Assembly: GCA_964057225.1 (NCBI GenBank)
Contig: OZ059898.1
Coordinates: 10,912,001-10,976,000 of the forward strand
Direction of reading: 5' to 3'
DNA length: 64,000 bases
Source: Auanema rhodensis
Lineage: Eukaryota > Animalia > Nematoda
Each line of letters starts with the position of its first letter. Positions within the stretch are counted from its first letter, which is position 1. Made by a program: the position numbers and the translations under genes. Below are positions 54,482-64,000 of this stretch, piece after piece. Below the pieces are notes generated by a model, which ran no database searches, was not told the DNA's origin, and worked only from the letters and a program-made list of their open reading frames with translations.

Positions 54482-57203
54482 TCATTGTTTTTTCATTGAT
54501 TTTTTAATTAATGCGTTGAACTGAGGAAACTTTTCGGATGCTTTCTGTAATCTTGCTAGTCGTATTTCAGGGTTGTAGGCATGAAGCCAATATGCTTCCA
54601 TCATAGTTTTTGACTGAAAGTAACTGAAATGAAAGACAAACACAAGGTAAAGCGTACAGCTAGTTGAATTTCTCCGCGTCTCTGCATCTCATATCCACCA
54701 CACTTGCTCAAAAGGGAATATGTGTCAGCTGATAATTGAATTTTTAGAGCTAAAATAATATGAATAAGCAAATAGACATTGATTGATTAATGGTTTTTTG
54801 ATATTTTAAAATTGTTGAACAATTGTTTTTAGCAGTATTCTTTGTTATCACTATGTTATGCCAACTGATTACAACAAACCTTCTCCTGAACTTTCCATAT
54901 TACTTGCTGTTATGACGGTATCACCAAATAAACAATATCGTGGCATTTTCACTCCCACAACACCTGTGACGACCGGACCTGAATGCAATCCAATACGGAT
55001 ACGTAGACGTTCCTCAGGAGCATGACGTACTTTAAAAGTCTAAAATTATTTTTACTTGTAGGATTATATTGAATTTTGTTGAAAAGTAATCATACATCCA
55101 TATTCTGAAGTAGTTCCCAACTAGCAGATGCCACTTCTCCAGCATGATGTATACCATTTGTTGTGGGCAAACCGGACACATACATATATGCATCTCCAAT
55201 AGTTTCAATTTTATAGCAATCAAAATGATCAATAATTTGATCAAAATCAGTATAAAGATCATTTAACATGTTTACAATCTGGAAAAAGATATGATTGCAC
55301 AATGTTCCTTCAGTTCAGTTCGGTTGTTTGTTTGTTCTGATTATGAGAAAAAAGTTTGAGCATTTACCTGCATGGGTGTACTTCTGCTGCTCAATGCTGT
55401 GAATCCAACAATATCAGAAAAATAAATCGTGATACTATCGAAAAATTCAGCTTCTACTGGACGACCATTTTTCAAGCTATCAGCCACTGAGCTATAGCAT
55501 TGAGTCAAAGATTGTTGAAATACGTAACTGGGGGAAAAAACCTTGGAAGAAGCTGAAGCAATAAGCGTTCATTACGACGACGTTCTTCTTCCAGCTCATC
55601 CGTTCGTTCTTTGATCACATCCTCTAAATTATATCGATATCTATCCAATAATTCCATGATATTATCAGCTATATTTCCTTTCCTATAATTGTTTTTTACG
55701 ATAATATTCAATGTCAGAACAATAGATCGAACAATCCTCTAGATAATGGTTTTAATTTATCCCGCACTTTCCGAATATTTGGTCGTTCCAGCGGATTTTC
55801 TTTCCAACACCTTTAGTAAATAGTTTCAATTGAAAAATATTTTTGTTCTTATACACTCACCATTCTACCATTTCAATAAGAATTGGGGGAGATTTTCGAA
55901 TCAACTCAATATCGGGACGTAGTATATGTTCAGCATTTGTATTTTTCAATTGTTGAACAATTTCTAAACCAGTTTACCATACATGTACATGTATTGTTAA
56001 ATGAAAATATATAGCATACCAGATGAATCAAGTAAATCATCACCATATGGTCCTTCTCTTCCATAAACTTCATATAAAATAATTGCAAGTGAGTACATGT
56101 CAGCTCTAGCAATTTCCTCCTTTGTGAGTGTATCTTTTTGACAATCCAAACGTAAAAGTTCTGGGGCAGACCATAGCATATCTGTGAAAGAAATATGATT
56201 TTCAATACATATTCTCAATTTTAACCATCTGGACGTGGTGGTGGTTCATCGATTCGAATCTTTTCCATTCCAAAGTTACTTAATTTTACCCTCCAATAAG
56301 CATCAACAACACAATTACTGCTCTTTAAATTTCCATGATACCCAATTTTGCACTTATCATGAAGATATCGTAATCCCTATAAAATTGTATCATAAAAATT
56401 TCATAAGATGAAATCAGAATTTCAAACCTTAGTAATATCTTCGATAAAAGACACTTTGAACATTCGATCCAGACGTAAGTCAGGATTGCGGACCAAATCC
56501 TGAAAATTTCATATTTAGTCTCTAAGATATTTATCTAGACTACAGAAAGTATTATAAGAAATGATGACATATTGCAACTTACACATAAACTTTTTCTTAA
56601 TCCATATGAATGAACGGTGAATATGAGAGCCGGTTCTATAATAATACCATGGAACTTATTAAGATTTTCATGAACAGCATTCATCAACTGAAAAAAATTT
56701 TTTTTTTCAATTCAAGAACATAAATTCTAAATACCAAATCTATTTCACGTTTCATATCTCGGGTCAGTTTCAAATTGTCTTTATATATTCGTCTAACTGT
56801 AACTAGAGAGTTATCCAACTTCGCCAATTGCCAATCTTCAATATTGTTCCAAGCATCGATATTAATCTCATTTTTCTATATTTGAAAAATAACTTCAAAT
56901 TTATAAAAAACCAGTACATCAGATTTAACATTTCTTCGTTTATAAGCTCGACGAATGTTATTTGAATAGAACTCCATTGTTCCAGGCATAGGGCCGTCTT
57001 CGTTGTTGAGTGAATGCAGAGACTTTTATTATTAAAACACATAGATTTTTAATAAAATACACAATCTTACTTTGACACTCATCATCGAAGCCATTAAACT
57101 ACCTGCTCTGCTCGATCCGAAACTGTTTAAATCTTGTAAAGTAATATCTCTTCGTGAAAGCAAATAGTATGACGATTCTAAGCGACGCTCGTATGCAATC
57201 CAT
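54482..57203 (-). CDS. Receptor-type guanylyl cyclase, intracellular part (juxtamembrane, kinase-homology, coiled coil, cyclase); 5' exons lie beyond the tRNA array
   Basis: [60 protein letters not shown] and [11 protein letters not shown]. The first visible exon starts [11 protein letters not shown] after a TTTTCAG acceptor at 57204. Confidence 0.92.
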
Positions 57204-57403
57204 CTGAAAATATTATTTTGTGTGAAAGAACTCTCTTCGCAGGAGGCATATTTGAGCTTCAGTGGTCTAAGGCACTGCGTTCAGCTCGAGCTACAAATAG
57301 TACGTTTTGGAGAAACATCGAACAACTTTTTAGATTTTGAACAATTTCAAACCAGCGCCTTAAATTTTTGGCTCAAAATATAGCTACTAACTGGTGTTAT
57401 CAT

Positions 57404-57487
57404 GTCATTCTAGCCGAGTGGTCTAAGGCGCTGCGTTCAGGTCGCAGTCCTCTCCGGAGGGCGCAGGTTCGAATCCTGCGGATGACA
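57404..57487 (+). tRNA. tRNA-Leu(CAG) copy 1
   Basis: Acceptor GTCATTC/GGATGAC, anticodon stem-loop CTGCG-TTCAGGT-CGCAG, long variable arm, GGTTCGAATCC B-box, T5 terminator. Has A instead of G at position 9. Confidence 0.93.
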
Positions 57488-57578
57488 GTATCTTTTTGGA
57501 AACCAAATCACTTTTCTAATTTCAAACCAGCGCCTTAAAGTTTTGGCGGAAACTGAAGCTCACAACTGTTTTTGCCAT

Positions 57579-57622
57579 GTCATTCTGAACTAGTGAACTG
57601 AGGCGCTGCGCCCGTTCGCAGT
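57579..57622 (+). pseudogene. Truncated pseudo-tRNA-Leu (first of the alternating B subunits)
   Basis: GTCATTCTGAACTAGTGAACTGAGGCGCTGCG..CGCAGT aligns to the tRNA 5' half; the variable arm, T arm/B-box and 3' acceptor strand are deleted. Confidence 0.85.
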
Positions 57623-57720
57623 ATTATCAGTATTGCTTTGAAAACCGAATCATTTTTCTAATTTCAAACCAGCGCCTTAAATTTTTGGCTCAAAATATAG
57701 CTAATAACTGTTGTTATCAT

Positions 57721-57804
57721 GTCATTCTGGCCGAGTGGTCTAAGGCGCTGCGTTCAGGTCGCAGTCCTCTCCGGAGGGCGCAGGTTCGAATCCTGCGGAT
57801 GACA
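57721..57804 (+). tRNA. tRNA-Leu(CAG) copy 2
   Basis: Consensus 84-nt copy. Confidence 0.95.
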
Positions 57805-58037
57805 GTATCTTTTTGGAAACCAAATCACTTTTTTAATTTCAAACAAGCGCCTTAAAGTTTCAGCGATAACTGAAGCTCACAACTGTTTTTGCCATGTCAT
57901 TCTGAACTAGTGAACTGAGGCGCTGCGCCCGTTCGCAGTATTATCAGTATTGCTGTGAAAACTGAATCATTTTTCTAATTTCAAACCAGCGCCTTAAATT
58001 TTTGGCTCAAAATATAGCTAATAACTGTTGTTATCAT

Positions 58038-58121
58038 GTCATTCTGGCCGAGTGGTCTAAGGCGCTGCGTTCAGGTCGCAGTCCTCTCCGGAGGGCGCAG
58101 GTTCGAATCCTGCGGATGACA
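58038..58121 (+). tRNA. tRNA-Leu(CAG) copy 3
   Basis: Consensus copy. Confidence 0.95.
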
Positions 58122-58354
58122 GTATCTTTTTGGAAACCAAATCACTTTTTTAATTTCAAACCAGCGCCTTAAAGTTTTGGCGGAAACTGAAGCTCACAAC
58201 TGTGTTTGCCATGTCATTCTGATCTAGTGAACTGAGGCGCTGCGCCCGTTCGCAGTATTATCAGTATTGCTTTGAAAACCGAATCATTTTTCTAATTTCA
58301 AACCAGCGCCTTGAATTTTTGGCTCAAAATATAGCTAATAACTGTTGTTATCAT

Positions 58355-58438
58355 GTCATTCTGGCCGAGTGGTCTAAGGCGCTGCGTTCAGGTCGCAGTC
58401 CTCTCCGGAGGGCGCAGGTTCGAATCCTGCGGATGACA
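58355..58438 (+). tRNA. tRNA-Leu(CAG) copy 4
   Basis: Consensus copy. Confidence 0.95.
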
Positions 58439-58671
58439 GTATCTTTTTGGAAACCAAATCACTTTTTTAATTTCAAACCAGCGCCTTAAAGTTTTGGCGG
58501 AAACTGAAGCTCACAACTGTGTTTGCCATGTCATTCTGATCTAGTGAACTGAGGCGCTGCGCCCGTTCGCAGTATTATCAGTATTGCTTTGAAAACCGAA
58601 TCATTTTTCTAATTTCAAACCAGCGCCTTAAATTTTTGGCTCAAAATATAGCTAATAACTGTTGTTATCAT

Positions 58672-58755
58672 GTCATTCTGGCCGAGTGGTCTAAGGCGCT
58701 GCGTTCAGGTCGCAGTCCTCTCCGGAGGGCGCAGGTTCGAATCCTGCGGATGACA
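58672..58755 (+). tRNA. tRNA-Leu(CAG) copy 5
   Basis: Consensus copy. Confidence 0.95.
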
Positions 58756-58989
58756 GTATCTTTTTGGAAACCAAATCACTTTTTTAATTTCAAACCAGCG
58801 CCTCAAAGTTTTGGCGGAAACTGAAGCTCGCAACTGTGTTTGCCATGTCATTCTGATCTAGTGAACTGAGGCGCTGCGGCCAGTTCGCAGTATTATCAGT
58901 ATTGCTGTGAAAACTGAATCATTTTTCTAATTTCAAACCAGCGCCTTAAATTTTTGGCTCAAAATATAGCTAATAACTGTTGTTATCAT

Positions 58990-59073
58990 GTCATTCTGGC
59001 CGAGTGGTCTAAGGCGCTGCGTTCAGGTCGCAGTCCTCTCCGGAGGGCGCAGGTTCGAATCCTGCGGATGACA
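58990..59073 (+). tRNA. tRNA-Leu(CAG) copy 6
   Basis: Consensus copy. Confidence 0.95.
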
Positions 59074-59307
59074 GTATCTTTTTGGAAACCAAATCACTTT
59101 TTTAATTTCAAACCAGCGCCTTAAAGTTTTGGCGGAAACTGAAGCTCACAACTGTTTTTGCCATGTCATTCTGATCTAGTGAACTGAGGCGCTGCGGCCA
59201 GTTCGCAGTATTATCAGTATTGCTTTGAAAACCGAATCATCTTTCTAATTTCAAACCAGCGCCTTAAATGTTTGGCTCAAAATAAAGCTAATAACTGTTG
59301 TTATCAT

Positions 59308-59391
59308 GTCATTCTGGCCGAGTGGTCTAAGGCGCTGCGTTCAGGTCGCAGTCCTCTCCGGAGGGCGCAGGTTCGAATCCTGCGGATGACA
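59308..59391 (+). tRNA. tRNA-Leu(CAG) copy 7
   Basis: Consensus copy. Confidence 0.95.
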
Positions 59392-59624
59392 GTATCTTTT
59401 TGGAAACCGAATCACTTTTTTAATTTCAAACAAGCGCCTTAAAGTTTCAGCGATAACTGAAGCTCACAACTGTTTTTGCCATGTCATTCTGAACTAGTGA
59501 ACTGAGGCGCTGCGCCCGTTCGCAGTATTATCAGTATTGCTGTGAAAACTGAATCATTTTTCTAATTTCAAACCAGCGCCTTAAATTTTTGGCTCAAAAT
59601 ATAGCTAATAACTGTTGTTATCAT

Positions 59625-59708
59625 GTCATTCTGGCCGAGTGGTCTAAGGCGCTGCGTTCAGGTCGCAGTCCTCTCCGGAGGGCGCAGGTTCGAATCCTGC
59701 GGATGACA
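59625..59708 (+). tRNA. tRNA-Leu(CAG) copy 8
   Basis: Consensus copy. Confidence 0.95.
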
Positions 59709-59942
59709 GTATCTTTTTGGAAACCAAATCACTTTTTTAATTTCAAACCAGCGCCTTAAAGTTTTGGCGGAAACTGAAGCTCACAACTGTGTTTGCCATG
59801 TCATTCTGATCTAGTGAACTGAGGCGCTGCGGCCAGTTCGCAGTATTATCAGTATTGCTGTGAAAACTGAATCATTTTTCTAATTTCAAACCAGCGCCTT
59901 AAATTTTTGGCTCAAAATATAGCTAATAACTGTTGTTATCAT

Positions 59943-60026
59943 GTCATTCTGGCCGAGTGGTCTAAGGCGCTGCGTTCAGGTCGCAGTCCTCTCCGGAGGG
60001 CGCAGGTTCGAATCCTGCGGATGACA
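59943..60026 (+). tRNA. tRNA-Leu(CAG) copy 9
   Basis: Consensus copy. Confidence 0.95.
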
Positions 60027-60259
60027 GTATCTTTTTGGAAACCAAATCACTTTTTTAATTTCAAACCAGCGCCTTAAAGTTTCAGCGATAACTGAAGCTC
60101 ACAACTGTTTTTGCCATGTCATTCTGAACTAGTGAACTGAGGCGCTGCGCCCGTTCGCAGTATTATCAGTATTGCTTTGAAAACCGAATCATTTTTCTAA
60201 TTTCAAACCAGCGCCTTAAATTTTTGGCTCAAAATATAGCTAATAACTGTTGTTATCAT

Positions 60260-60343
60260 GTCATTCTGGCCGAGTGGTTTAAGGCGCTGCGTTCAGGTCG
60301 CAGTCCTCTCCGGAGGGCGCAGGTTCGAATCCTGCGGATGACA
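60260..60343 (+). tRNA. tRNA-Leu(CAG) copy 10
   Basis: One C>T change in the D-loop (GGTTTAA). Confidence 0.9.
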
Positions 60344-60577
60344 GTATCTTTTTGGAAACCAAATCACTTTTTTAATTTCAAACAAACGCCTTAAAGTTTC
60401 AGCGATAACTGAAGCTCACAACTGTTTTTGCCATGTCATTCTGATCTAGTGAACTGAGGCGCTGCGGCCAGTTCGCAGTATTATCAGTATTGCTGTGAAA
60501 ACTGAATCATTTTTCTAATTTCAAACCAGCGCCTTAAATTTTTGGCTCAAAATATAGCTAATAACTGTTGTTATCAT

Positions 60578-60661
60578 GTCATTCTGGCCGAGTGGTCTAA
60601 GGCGCTGCGTTCAGGTCGCAGTCCTCTCCGGAGGGCGCAGCTTCGAATCCTGCGGATGACA
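60578..60661 (+). tRNA. tRNA-Leu(CAG) copy 11, B-box mutant (possible pseudogene)
   Basis: G>C at 60641 (GCTTCGAATCC) breaks the invariant G53-C61 pair. Confidence 0.7.
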
Positions 60662-60895
60662 GTATATTTTTGGAAACCAAATCACTTTTTTAATTTCAAA
60701 CCAGCGCCTTAAAGTTTTGGCGGAAACTGAAGCTCACAACTGTGTTTGCCATGTCAATCTGATCTAGTGAACTGAGGCGCTGCGGCCAGTTCGCAGTATT
60801 ATCAGTATTGCTGTGAAAACTGAATCATTTTTCTAATTTCAAACCAGCGCCTTAAATTTTTGGCTCAAAATATAGCTAATAACTGTTGTTATCAT

Positions 60896-60979
60896 GTCAT
60901 TCTGGCCGAGTGGTCTAAGGCGCTGCGTTCAGGTCGCAGTCCTCTCCGGAGGGCGCAGGTTCGAATCCTGCGGATGACA
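60896..60979 (+). tRNA. tRNA-Leu(CAG) copy 12
   Basis: Consensus copy. Confidence 0.95.
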
Positions 60980-61213
60980 GTACCTTTTTGGAAACCAAAT
61001 AACTTTTTTAATTCCAAACCAGCGCCCTAAAGTTTTGGCGGAAACTGAAGCTCACAACTGTGTTTGCCATGTCATTCTGATCTAGTGAACTGAGGCGCTG
61101 CGGCCAGTTCGCAGTATTATCAGTATTGCTGTGAAAACTGAATCATTTTTCTAATTTCAAACCAGCGCCTTGAATTTTTGGCTCAAAATATAGCTAATAA
61201 CTGTTGTTATTAT

Positions 61214-61297
61214 GTCATTCTGGCCGAGTGGTCTAAGGCGCTGCGTTCAGGTCGCAGTCCTCTCCGGAGGGCGCAGGTTCGAATCCTGCGGATGACA
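61214..61297 (+). tRNA. tRNA-Leu(CAG) copy 13
   Basis: Consensus copy. Confidence 0.95.
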
Positions 61298-61530
61298 GTA
61301 TCTTTTTGGAAACCAAATCACTTTTTTAATTTCAAACAAGCGCCTTAAAGTTTCAGCGATAACTGAAGCTCACAACTGTGTTTGCCATGTCATTCTGATC
61401 TAGTGAACTGAGGCGCTGCGCCCGTTTGCAGTATTATCCGTATTGCTTTGAAAACTGAATCATTTTTCTAATTTCAAACCAGCGCCTTGAATTTTTGGCT
61501 CAAAATATAGCTAATAACTGTTGTTATCAT

Positions 61531-61614
61531 GTCATTCTGGCCGAGTGGTCTAAGGCGCTGCGTTCAGGTCGCAGTCCTCTCAGGAGGGCGCAGGTTCGAA
61601 TCCTGCGGATGACA
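61531..61614 (+). tRNA. tRNA-Leu(CAG) copy 14
   Basis: C>A change in the variable-arm loop. Confidence 0.93.
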
Positions 61615-61848
61615 GTATCTTTTTGGAAACCAAATCACTTTTTTAATTTCAAACCAGCGCCTCAAAGTTTTGGCGGAAACTGAAGCTCACAACTGTGTTT
61701 GCCATGTCATTCTGATCTAGTGAACTGAGGCGCTGCGGCCAGTTCGCAGTATTATCAGTATTGCTGTGAAAACTGAATCATTTTTCTAATTTCAAACCAG
61801 CGCCTTAAATTTTTGGCTCAAAATATAGCTAATAACTGTTGTTATCAT

Positions 61849-61931
61849 GTCATTCTGGCCGAGTGTCTAAGGCGCTGCGTTCAGGTCGCAGTCCTCTCCG
61901 GAGGGCGCAGGTTCGAATCCTGCGGATGACA
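61849..61931 (+). tRNA. tRNA-Leu(CAG) copy 15, D-loop GG>G deletion (possible pseudogene or sequencing error)
   Basis: GAGTGTCTAA instead of GAGTGGTCTAA. Confidence 0.7.
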
Positions 61932-62165
61932 GTATCTTTTTGGAAACCAAATCACTTTTTTAATTTCAAACAAGCGCCTTAAAGTTTCAGCGATAACTGA
62001 AGCTCACAACTGTTTTTGCCATGTCATTCTGATCTAGTGAACTGAGGCGCTGCGGCCAGTTCGCAGTATTATCAGTATTGCTGTGAAAACTGAATCATTT
62101 TTCTAATTTCAAACCAGCGCCTTAAATTTTTGGCTCAAAATATAGCTAATAACTGTTGTTATCAT

Positions 62166-62249
62166 GTCATTCTGGCCGAGTGGTCTAAGGCGCTGCGTTC
62201 AGGTCGCAGTCCTCTCCGGAGGGCGCAGGTTCGAATCCTGCGGATGACA
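62166..62249 (+). tRNA. tRNA-Leu(CAG) copy 16
   Basis: Consensus copy. Confidence 0.95.
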
Positions 62250-62483
62250 GTACCTTTTTGGAAACCAAATAACTTTTTTAATTTCAAACCAGCGCCCTAA
62301 AGTTTTGGCGGAAACTGAAGCTCACAACTGTGTTTGCCATGTCATTCTGATCTAGTGAACTGAGGCGCTGCGGCCAGTTCGCAGTATTATCAGTATTGCT
62401 GTGAAAACTGAATCATTTTTCTAATTTCAAACCAGCGCCTTGAATTTTTGGCTCAAAATATAGCTAATAACTGTTGTTATCAT

Positions 62484-62567
62484 GTCATTCTGGCCGAGTG
62501 GTCTAAGGCGCTGCGTTCAGGTCGCAGTCCTCTCCGGAGGGCGCAGGTTCGAATCCTGCGGATGACA
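62484..62567 (+). tRNA. tRNA-Leu(CAG) copy 17
   Basis: Consensus copy. Confidence 0.95.
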
Positions 62568-62800
62568 GTATCTTTTTGGAAACCAAAACACTTTTTTAAT
62601 TTCAAACCAGCGCCTTAAAGTTTCAGCGATAACTGAAGCTCACAACTGTGTTTGCCATGTCATTCTGATCTAGTGAACTGAGGCGCTGCGCCCGTTTGCA
62701 GTATTATCCGTATTGCTTTGAAAACTGAATCATTTTTCTAATTTCAAACCAGCGCCTTGAATTTTTGGCTCAAAATATAGCTAATAACTGTTGTTATCAT

Positions 62801-62884
62801 GTCATTCTGGCCGAGTGGTCTAAGGCGCTGCGTTCAGGTCGCAGTCCTCTCCGGAGGGCGCAGGTTCGAATCCTGCGGATGACA
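62801..62884 (+). tRNA. tRNA-Leu(CAG) copy 18
   Basis: Consensus copy. Confidence 0.95.
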
Positions 62885-63117
62885 GTATCTTTTTGGAAAC
62901 CAAATCACTTTTTTAATTTCAAACAAGCGCTTTAAAGTTTCAGCGATAACTGAAGCTCACAACTGTTTTTGCCATGTCATTCTGAACTAGTGAACTGAGG
63001 CGCTGCGCCCGTTCGCAGTATTATCAGTATTGCTTTGAAAACCGAATCATTTTTCTAATTTCAAACCAGCGCCTTAAATTTTTGGCTCAAAATATAGCTA
63101 ATAACTGTTGTTATCAT

Positions 63118-63201
63118 GTCATTCTGGCCGAGTGGTCTAAGGCGCTGCGTTCAGGTCGCAGTCCTCTCCGGAGGGCGCAGGTTCGAATCCTGCGGATGAC
63201 A
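63118..63201 (+). tRNA. tRNA-Leu(CAG) copy 19
   Basis: Consensus copy. Confidence 0.95.
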
Positions 63202-63434
63202 GTATCTTTTTGGAAACCAAATCACTTTTTTAATTTCAAACCAGCGCCTTAAAGTTTTGGCGGAAACTGAAGCTCACAACTGTGTTTGCCATGTCATTCT
63301 GATCTAGTGAACTGAGGCGCTGCGCCTGTTCGCAGTATTATCAGTATTGCTTTGAAAACCGAATCATTTTTCTAATTTCAAACCAGCGCCTTAAATTTTT
63401 GGCTCAAAATATAGCTAATAACTGTTGTTATCAT

Positions 63435-63518
63435 GTCATTCTGGCCGAGCGGTCTAAGGCGCTGCGTTCAGGTCGCAGTCCTCTCCGGAGGGCGCAGGTT
63501 CGAATCCTGCGGATGACA
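63435..63518 (+). tRNA. tRNA-Leu(CAG) copy 20
   Basis: T>C change in the D-loop (GAGCGG). Confidence 0.93.
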
Positions 63519-63752
63519 GTATCTTTTTGGAAACCAAATCACTTTTTTAATTTCAAACCAGCGCCTTAAAGTTTTGGCGGAAACTGAAGCTCACAACTGT
63601 GTTTGCCATGTCATTCTGATCTAGTGAACTGAGGCGCTGCGGCCAGTTCGCAGTATTATCAGTATTGCTGTGAAAACTGAATCATTTTTCTAATTTCAAA
63701 CCAGCGCCTTAAATTTTTGGCTCAAAATATAGCTAATAACTGTTGTTATCAT

Positions 63753-63836
63753 GTCATTCTGGCCGAGTGGTCTAAGGCGCTGCGTTCAGGTCGTAGTCCT
63801 CTCCGGAGGGCGCAGGTTCGAATCCTGCGGATGACA
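63753..63836 (+). tRNA. tRNA-Leu(CAG) copy 21
   Basis: C>T change in the anticodon stem gives a G-U pair. Confidence 0.88.
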
Positions 63837-64000
63837 GTACCTTTTTGGAAACCAAATCACTTTTTTAATTTCAAACCAGCGCCCTAAAGTTTTGGCGGAA
63901 ACTGAAGCTCACAACTGTGTTTGCCATGTCATTCTGATCTAGTGAACTGAGGCGCTGCGGCCAGTTCGCAGTATTATCAGTATTGCTTTGAAAACCGAAT

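Follow-up and report, generated by a model that had tools for sequence, protein, structure and literature searches.

The window analysed here, a stretch of 64,000 nucleotides of the nematode A. rhodense (contig OZ059898.1, positions 10,912,001 to 10,976,000), ends within a tandem array of tRNA-Leu(CAG) genes, and the complete array comprises 140 of them, lying antisense in an intron of a receptor guanylyl cyclase gene. We put at about 70% the probability that it is a genuine intronic array of Pol III genes, grown by amplification of a DNA unit, with the tRNA body under selection. The contig carrying the array is called C6 below, and C1, C3 and C7 are other contigs of the genome.

Structure of the array and its repeat unit

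ARAGORN detected 21 tRNA-Leu(CAG) genes of 84 nt each in the window, all on the + strand between 57403 and 63837, and all 21 matched Rfam RF00005 at 46.5-55.2 bits (gathering score 29). Each has an A box, a B box, a discriminator A and a T5 terminator 5 nt downstream. TRF reported the region 57343-64000 (+) as a single array with a period of 317, 21.0 copies and 97% matches. The preliminary description had counted at least 21 copies; the array proved real, but the number was a large underestimate, as following it beyond the window yielded 140 tRNA-Leu(CAG) genes over 52.4 kb, every copy on the + strand (ARAGORN), of which the window holds 21 units. The far end of the array, which the preliminary description had proposed to look for in the adjoining DNA, is located at C6:11021633. 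At the near end, the regular array starts 139 bp from the splice acceptor of the host gene, in agreement with the earlier estimate of about 140 bp, and sequence and alignment place a degenerate edge copy of the tRNA 5′ half, with a readable CAG loop, between the acceptor and the regular array (57253-57290, +).

The 317-bp unit consists of one intact tRNA gene, with A box, B box and T5, and one truncated relic without a B box. The relics, exemplified by that at 57577-57625 (+), were recognized from the TRF sub-period of 142-143 and from the alignment of sub-units; they keep the 5′ half up to the anticodon stem, with a mutated anticodon loop, and lack the variable arm, the T arm (B box) and the 3′ acceptor strand. 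No B box was found in any of the 135 truncated halves in the array. In the intact genes, the A-box pattern is present in 138 of the 140 copies, the exact B box GGTTCGANYCC in 133 and a T5 run within 25 nt downstream in 138, and folding at minimum energy gives a cloverleaf with a long variable arm, which bears out the earlier remark that most copies keep intact boxes, cloverleaf and terminator. The anticodon CAG, the long variable arm and the discriminator A73 agree with Leu identity.

Ninety-five of the 140 tRNAs have exactly the consensus sequence, and in a further 14 the sole difference is G78A, which converts a U.G pair into U-A, so that 109 copies have the consensus or one pair-preserving change; about 31 copies carry changes, mostly damaging. 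G78A is found in 18 array copies and in neither of the dispersed tRNA-Leu(CAG) genes. There are two of the latter (C1 and C7), 100% identical to the array consensus and with unrelated flanks, and the array accounts for 140 of the 142 tRNA-Leu(CAG) genes detectable in the genome.

The spacing from tRNA to tRNA is 316-318 bp, except for a gap containing a retroelement and a single 461-bp unit. The latter holds a chimeric sub-unit, with a 5′ end of the intact type and a 3′ end of the truncated type, which is a direct trace of out-of-register exchange. Multi-unit duplications are visible in the haplotype strings of the array units, and two copies of a 16-unit segment (5,077 bp) are 99.90% identical, compared with 96.1% out of register. 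When the units are typed at the common variant sites, 67 different haplotypes can be told apart among the 140. The earlier phrase "tRNA gene turned satellite" is thus apt: head-to-tail 317-bp units of constant period and high identity, with higher-order duplications, occupy a single locus.

A spacer 20-mer gave 261 matches in the genome, all on C6, all forward and confined to the array locus, indicating that the 317-bp unit is not dispersed. Apart from the tRNA-like sequence itself, nothing favors the idea that the repeats are a tRNA-derived SINE or retroposed tRNA; the period is constant and head-to-tail, the upstream flanks were co-amplified, and neither A-rich tails nor target-site duplications of individual copies were seen. 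This origin is extremely improbable, and we rejected it.

The gap is occupied by an LTR retroelement of 7,755 bp, which splits the array into two blocks of 108 and 32 tRNA genes. It is inserted 3 nt upstream of tRNA position +1, is flanked by the target-site duplication GTTAT, and has LTRs of 416 bp that are 100% identical. Host exons hidden in this 8-kb gap were considered and discarded, the gap being the retroelement with its target-site duplication. Several transposon relics are also present in the neighbourhood of the locus.

The duplicated 16-unit segment is the one with the retroelement insertion site, and its second copy follows immediately, without the retroelement. This arrangement mimics two alleles joined in series, and the length of the array might therefore be an artefact of assembly, either by over-expansion or by stitching of two haplotypes in tandem. 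However, the assembly was made from HiFi reads of an inbred line, the 67 haplotypes are enough to anchor long reads, 124 copies remain without the suspect segment, and on either side the array is bordered by unique exons belonging to one gene. We consider an artefact very unlikely.

The host gene and its giant intron

The array lies in an intron of a receptor guanylyl cyclase gene, with tRNAs on the + strand and exons on the - strand, as the preliminary description had proposed. The intron is 52,462 nt long. Its acceptor AG (57204-57205, -; context TTTTCAG) precedes the juxtamembrane exon (57071-57203, -), and its donor GTAAGT is at C6:11021660-11021665 (-). A transmembrane exon, 32 bp past the far array end, joins the juxtamembrane exon in frame through these canonical splice sites, with a junction codon AA/A for Lys. 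The array would not have been intronic if the upstream exons of the gene did not exist, as had been pointed out earlier; the transmembrane exon and further upstream exons were found beyond the array, joined in frame.

The protein evidence on the host gene was obtained exon by exon. The other intracellular exons (54482-57070, -) encode the kinase-homology region, the dimerisation segment and the cyclase catalytic domain, as judged by Pfam and by tblastx to a paralogue on another chromosome (C3). Three exons matched Guanylate_cyc PF00211 (E 4e-17, 3e-13 and 1e-6). The Pkinase match, on one exon, was weak (17.7 bits, below the cut-off of 31.7), and the kinase-homology region aligns to the C3 paralogue by tblastx. 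The transmembrane exon of 88 nt encodes a stretch of 28 hydrophobic residues followed by K, W and two R residues, according to our reading of the sequence rather than a predictor. The corresponding intron of the C3 paralogue, which agrees with the giant intron in position and phase, measures about 60 nt.

Indirect support for an extracellular ligand-binding domain of the ANF_receptor type comes from the motif CGFDNEYC, which lies just before the transmembrane exon; in the C3 paralogue, CGYDNSKC follows immediately on the ANF_receptor matches. Searches with the upstream extracellular exons were negative: the exon pieces had no Pfam match at E up to 10, a genome-wide profile search with PF01094 gave no match at the host locus, no paralogue was found with two of the exons, and neither the ESM Atlas nor PDB sequences contained a match. 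Comparison with the C3 paralogue by tblastx and tblastn revealed no homology, and a phmmer search of one upstream exon against 1.84 billion representatives returned a single match, an unrelated repetitive DUF5970 protein. The host gene presumably still functions. It could also be decaying, since a GC-AG intron or a weak donor is needed to connect the extracellular part with the transmembrane exon.

Probable selection on the tRNA body, possible activity and codon use

The tRNA body had a per-site diversity of 0.0099, five times lower than that of the spacers and relics (0.050). Common variants occupied 1 of 84 tRNA-body columns, compared with 31 of 234 spacer and relic columns (Fisher p = 0.0006), and the sole common variant of the body preserves pairing. 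These diversity patterns suggest that purifying selection has kept the tRNA body intact while the spacers drift, which in turn suggests that many of the array copies are transcribed, now or recently, and feed the supply of tRNA-Leu(CAG). Selection on any single copy must be weak, given 140 copies.

The main competing explanation is a neutral or selfish satellite on a tRNA base, in which the copies are silenced, translation depends on the two dispersed genes, and the conservation of the body results from recent amplification and homogenisation. Several observations fit it. Half of all sub-units are dead relics amplified alongside the live genes; among rare stem variants 14 of 16 break a pair, as expected if individual copies decay freely; and many tRNAs, as well as other satellites, are massively amplified in this genome. 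The copy number, too, is far above the need. CTG accounts for about 6% of Leu codons (4/64) in the exons sampled, a small sample that includes one mis-framed piece, and to the extent that this sample is representative, 140 tRNA-Leu(CAG) genes far exceed any obvious demand from a rare codon. Moreover, clustered tRNA genes of Arabidopsis with conserved Pol III elements and intact promoters are silent (PMC7544208), and by this analogy intact A and B boxes do not prove Pol III activity.

Homogenisation, however, acts on whole units, and therefore cannot account for a tRNA body five-fold less diverse than the spacers belonging to the same units, nor for the fact that the only common tRNA variant is one that preserves pairing. 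The usual GC-to-AT mutation bias should make the GC-rich body (62% GC, compared with 37%) more mutable, not less. For these reasons we regard the neutral satellite as unlikely, although it carries more weight than the other alternatives, and prefer an array under selection for its tRNA body. The notion that a CUG decoder was a special choice for amplification did not hold up, because the genome amplifies many tRNAs massively and codon demand need not drive this process.

Another possibility is that the locus is germline-restricted and eliminated from the soma, which would limit the action of the array to the germline and early embryo and make the receptor gene copy a germline-only relic. A satellite block occupies the centre of the chromosome, as samples of C6 at 9.75-10.5 Mb are 97-100% tandem repeat, and the locus, itself close to mid-chromosome, is 0.2-0.5 Mb away from this block; the transposon relics in the neighbourhood point in the same direction. 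On the other hand, the preprint on this genome puts autosomal break sites where repeat-rich DNA passes into DNA rich in genes (10.64898/2026.08.27.747507), and all samples from 10.75 to 12.66 Mb, as well as the window outside the array, are low in tandem repeat, which would place the locus on the retained side. A search of C6 with three patterns of the break-site motif yielded the outer sites at 3.83 and 16.50 Mb and a probable chance palindrome at 12.66 Mb, but no inner break site. The match at C6:16502166-79 coincides with a published break site, chromosome 5 at 16,502,174, whereas the sole match in the 10.75-12.66 Mb stretch (C6:12660531) has no AT-rich flanks and no adjoining satellite. 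We consider elimination of the locus unlikely.

Origin and meaning of the array

The array most likely goes back to one tRNA gene that lay antisense in a short intron of the receptor guanylyl cyclase gene. An early monomer of 175 bp was duplicated and one copy lost 33 bp including the B box, and the resulting 317-bp dimer, one live gene and one dead relic, was then amplified. Retroposition played no part in this growth; the DNA unit itself multiplied through repeated rounds of unequal recombination or replication slippage, and later through multi-unit segmental duplications, expanding an ancestral intron of about 60 nt to 52.5 kb. In C. elegans, 44% of the 609 tRNA genes reside in introns of protein-coding genes, on either strand (PMC4999229), and by analogy a single intronic tRNA gene is likely to have been the ancestral state of this locus. 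The C. elegans intronic tRNAs are single genes in ordinary introns, in contrast to the 52-kb array described here.

Amplification of tRNA genes as such is not new. In the available text of the preprint, the 180.9-Mb assembly of A. rhodense is reported to contain 19,554 tRNA genes, of which only 215 are pseudogenes, and tRNA tandem blocks are mentioned; that text does not describe the Leu(CAG) array, its 317-bp dimeric unit or the antisense filling of an intron (10.64898/2026.08.27.747507). The array alone is therefore an added instance of, and some mechanism for, a phenomenon already reported in outline. Its private traits are the 317-bp dimeric unit, the antisense orientation, the filling of an intron almost from splice site to splice site, and the gathering of essentially all copies of an isoacceptor.

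According to the accessible part of the report on Entamoeba, almost all tRNA genes are in tandem arrays that form a sizeable part of the genome and whose units evolve in concert; those units carry up to five different tRNA genes and short tandem repeats, and the arrays are not intronic (PMC2652664). The Leu(CAG) array, in contrast, contains one isoacceptor and coexists with dispersed copies. The clusters on chromosome 1 of Arabidopsis likewise share tandem tRNA units, local duplication and conserved Pol III elements with the present array (PMC2886086, PMC7544208), but the Arabidopsis array of PMC2886086 has 27 triplet units, and DNA methylation keeps the clusters silent. The nematode array has 140 units. 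To our knowledge, nematodes of this group lack cytosine methylation.

The position of the retroelement, 3 nt upstream of a tRNA, fits occupancy of the site by Pol III factors in the germline. Ty3 of yeast and TRE/DGLT-A of Dictyostelium are retrotransposons that target Pol III genes, and the element in the array resembles them in its insertion a few bases upstream of where the tRNA starts and in its target-site duplication of 5 bp. From the one insertion seen in this array, targeting of tRNA genes is a suggestion.

As 140 of the 142 tRNA-Leu(CAG) genes lie antisense in the intron of a sensory-neuron receptor gene that is possibly still spliced, the array and its host might be functionally coupled, the array being a regulatory structure and not a passive satellite. 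We think such coupling improbable. If it were true, the promoter or chromatin state of the host would gate the Pol III array, as has been shown for single intronic tRNAs of C. elegans, or the receptor gene would be split, or its output held down, by 140 Pol III units running head-on against it.

The locus shows how a tRNA satellite can arise from an ordinary intronic tRNA gene, in that an intron of about 60 nt, as judged by the length in the paralogue, has grown roughly 900-fold without visible destruction of the flanking exons. The dead half-copy in each unit is a built-in control by which selection on the tRNA can be told apart from homogenisation of the repeat, and G78A could serve as a natural tag for the use of array copies. 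Together with the other tRNA arrays of A. rhodense, the locus should be useful for asking why this genome has about 19,500 tRNA genes, whether Pol II is able to pass across long Pol III arrays, and whether tRNA arrays attract retroelements.

Extent of the array and the host intron

Within the window, which covers C6:10912001-10976000, ARAGORN detected 21 tRNA-Leu(CAG) genes on the + strand at 57403-63837, the number that a preliminary description had given as a minimum, and 21 of 21 scored 46.5-55.2 bits with Rfam RF00005 (gathering score 29). TRF found a single array there (57343-64000, period 317, 21.0 copies, 97% matches), and the GC content was 0.43-0.44 in the array against mostly about 0.30 across the remaining window. 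The fold predicted for the 84-nt tRNA is a cloverleaf whose variable arm is long. Past the window, there were 32, 31 and 24 further copies, a start-to-start gap of 8,077 bp, and then 15 and 17 copies, the last of which ends at L007:5507 (L003-L007 are the stretches that continue contig C6). The end of the array, which the same description had proposed to seek there, was thus reached at C6:11021633. In all, ARAGORN counted 140 genes, every one on the + strand and divided between a block of 108 and a block of 32, and the array spans C6:10969250-11021633 (52.4 kb), of which the tRNA repeat occupies 44.6 kb.

The gap is filled by an LTR retroelement of 7,755 bp (C6:11003675-11011429; L005:7675 to L006:5429) with a 5-bp target-site duplication (GTTAT), two 416-bp LTRs that are 100% identical to one another and a 406-aa open frame on its minus strand. 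Therefore, the array was one continuous block before the insertion. Only 3 nt separate the insertion point from the tRNA start downstream of it, the putative Pol III start of that copy.

When the whole genome assembly (180,911,798 bp) was searched, a 20-nt spacer motif gave 261 matches, on C6 only and in forward orientation only, and an exact 38-mer of the tRNA matched 125 times, of which 123 fell within the array and 2 outside it. The restriction of the spacer matches to the array locus indicates that the unit is not a dispersed element, and a SINE was rejected, these matches all lying at one locus and on one strand. Of the 142 detectable tRNA-Leu(CAG) genes of the genome, 140 belong to the array.

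On the minus strand, the intracellular exons of a receptor guanylyl cyclase gene occupy 54482-57203. Three of its exons matched Guanylate_cyc (E 4e-17 to 1e-6), one was weakly kinase-like, and the region aligned to a paralogue on contig C3 (C3:6363600-6372300, L014-L015, minus strand), which served as reference for the ancestral intron. At its far end the array is followed, after 32 bases, by an 88-nt transmembrane exon (L007:5666-5753, minus strand), which codes for a 28-residue hydrophobic helix and has TTCTAG and GTAAGT at its borders. A Lys codon spans the junction of this exon with the one at 57203, the former giving two bases and the latter one, and from there the reading frame continues into WIAYERRLE. 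The transmembrane exon is predicted to join in frame across the array, in agreement with the antisense, intronic position in a guanylyl cyclase gene proposed earlier. The predicted intron (C6:10969204-11021665) measures 52,462 nt, of which only about 46 nt next to the acceptor and 32 nt next to the donor are neither array nor retroelement. The C3 paralogue has a same-phase intron of about 60 nt right after the transmembrane helix, and the remaining introns of the host gene are about 43-47 nt, indicating that the array grew inside an ancestral short intron.

Farther upstream there are candidate exons; one begins with what resembles a signal peptide, and a CGFDNEYC motif is encoded shortly ahead of the helix. 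The C3 paralogue has a transmembrane exon, introns of about 60-77 nt and Pfam-detectable ANF_receptor exons, immediately after which the counterpart CGYDNSKC is found. Searches with Pfam, the paralogue, phmmer, the ESM Atlas and PDB gave no statistically supported homology for the upstream exons. Thus, of the exons expected past the array, the transmembrane one was found, while the extracellular ones are plausible candidates. At the junction of the motif exon (ending CGFDNEYCQDK) with the helix exon (L007:5754-5797, C6:11021754-11021797, minus strand), a 44-nt GC-AG intron would keep the motif, a weak 77-nt GT-AG intron would lose it, and the obvious GT donor leads to the wrong frame. This junction may use an unusual splice site or may mark an early gene lesion, and the host gene may be intact or its decay may have begun.

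Unit structure, signs of selection and growth

The start-to-start spacing of the tRNA copies was 317 bp in 79 cases, 318 bp in 55 and 316 bp in 3. Every unit is a dimer of a 175-bp part, in which a T5 terminator follows the intact tRNA gene at a distance of 5 nt, and a 142-bp part, whose upstream flank resembles that of the former and whose tRNA ends after the anticodon stem, leaving it without variable arm, T arm (B box) or 3′ acceptor strand. A B box was found in none of the 135 half-copies detected across the array. Among the 140 full copies, the A box is kept in 138, the exact B box in 133 and the T5 terminator in 138, and these counts, together with the fold, bear out the earlier statement that most copies have these elements and the cloverleaf intact. 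One unit of 461 bp (L007:2736-3196) contains an extra sub-unit with an intact-type 5′ end and a truncated-type 3′ end, which from its sequence is a recombinant of both sub-repeats, left behind when they recombined out of register. An older, degenerate half-copy forms the left boundary of the array; at its right boundary the array stops with a truncated sub-unit.

The consensus tRNA sequence was present in 95 of the 140 copies; 14 more had G78A alone, and 31 had other changes. G78A, which converts an acceptor-stem U.G pair to U-A, was carried by 18 array copies and is absent from both tRNA-Leu(CAG) genes outside the array, which are dispersed, one on C1 and one on C7. The bodies of these two genes equal the array consensus and their flanks are unrelated, and therefore the consensus is the working sequence of the organism. 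Per-site diversity was 0.0099 for the tRNA body, against 0.049 for the dead half-copy and 0.050 for the other spacer, and variants found in at least 7 copies occupied 1 of 84 tRNA columns versus 31 of 234 other columns (Fisher p = 0.0006). The sole common tRNA variant keeps pairing; 14 of 16 rare stem variants break the pair. Rare variants were mildly scarcer in the tRNA body (0.30 vs 0.42 per site, p = 0.05). Homogenisation is not the source of this contrast within units because whole units are copied together. The simplest reading is that single copies are freely damaged but that damaged tRNA versions fail to spread. At the sequence level, the locus shows all the features expected of Pol III tRNA genes and of a satellite-like array of genes, as the preliminary description anticipated in calling it a tRNA gene turned satellite.

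The 33 common variant sites defined 67 unit haplotypes, and haplotype strings reappear as multi-unit blocks along the array. A 16-unit segment of 5,077 bp across the retroelement site is repeated directly after, without the retroelement, at 99.90% identity (array units 101-132, approximately C6:11000837-11016750), against 96.1% when compared out of register. Either the segment was duplicated very recently, or the assembler joined two alleles in series; in the latter case 124 copies would be left.

Genomic and chromosomal setting

The A. rhodense preprint (10.64898/2026.08.27.747507) describes an inbred line assembled from HiFi reads to 180.9 Mb, with 19,554 annotated tRNAs, 215 of them pseudogenes, and with tRNA loci in tandem blocks. 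The short-read assembly of 2019 had only about 500 tRNA loci (PMC6469403), so arrays were collapsed there. Our rough Rfam tRNA scan of the whole genome yielded 28,079 first-look candidates, and its top scorers belong to a large set in both orientations (C4:18565922-18939185), spaced at about 377 bp or multiples over hundreds of kb. CTG was a rare Leu codon (4 of 64) in the exons sampled, a small set that includes one mis-framed piece. A CUG decoder had been regarded as an unexpected tRNA to amplify, but in a genome with other large tRNA arrays, such as that on C4, this is no peculiarity.

According to the same preprint, about 61% of the genome is somatically eliminated at palindromic break sites, one being on chromosome 5 around 16,502,174, and autosomal break sites lie at transitions between repeat-rich and gene-rich DNA. 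A break-site-like motif derived from a C6 site matched at C6:16502166-16502179, at the published site, and therefore C6 is very probably the preprint's chromosome 5. Exact matches to GTTYAGGCTNAGCC were found at C1:5565621, 10908628, 13336187 and 18003658, C6:3832630 and 16502166, C7:4740343, C4:6191300, C3:8877550, C5:5339168 and 10148030, and C8:10706796, several as inverted doublets; the reversed control had no exact match in the genome. These matches look like the published break sites, and the four on C1 would mark the limits of two retained arms. The inner break site of C6 was not located by motif pattern searches. A perfect 13-nt palindrome, TAGGCTCAGCCTA, at C6:12660531-12660543 (L038:3531-3543) in non-repetitive DNA lacks the AT-rich flanks typical of true break sites, and is probably a chance match because the reversed control pattern matched about as often. 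Tandem repeat accounted for 97-100% of C6 samples at 9.75-10.5 Mb and for 0-9% at 7.0-9.5 and 10.75-12.66 Mb; the longest arrays in the central satellite had periods of 1733, 1963, 863 and 231 bp at 9.75, 10.0, 10.25 and 10.5 Mb (L026-L029). Since break sites follow such repeat-rich to gene-rich transitions, the array locus (10.97-11.02 Mb) probably lies on the retained side, 0.2-0.5 Mb inside the right arm.

In C. elegans, 44% of 609 tRNA genes are single and intronic, and the host promoter has an influence (PMC4999229). The nearest counterparts of the present array are the other tRNA arrays of this genome, and after them come the Entamoeba tRNA arrays (PMC2652664) and the tRNA clusters of Arabidopsis (PMC2886086), shown to be silent there (PMC7544208). 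The present array is instructive in that an intron is filled nearly from splice site to splice site, each unit pairs a live gene with a dead relic, the diversity within units shows signs of selection on the tRNA body, a retroelement has inserted at the putative Pol III start of one copy, and nearly all genes of one isoacceptor (140/142) are gathered in one array.
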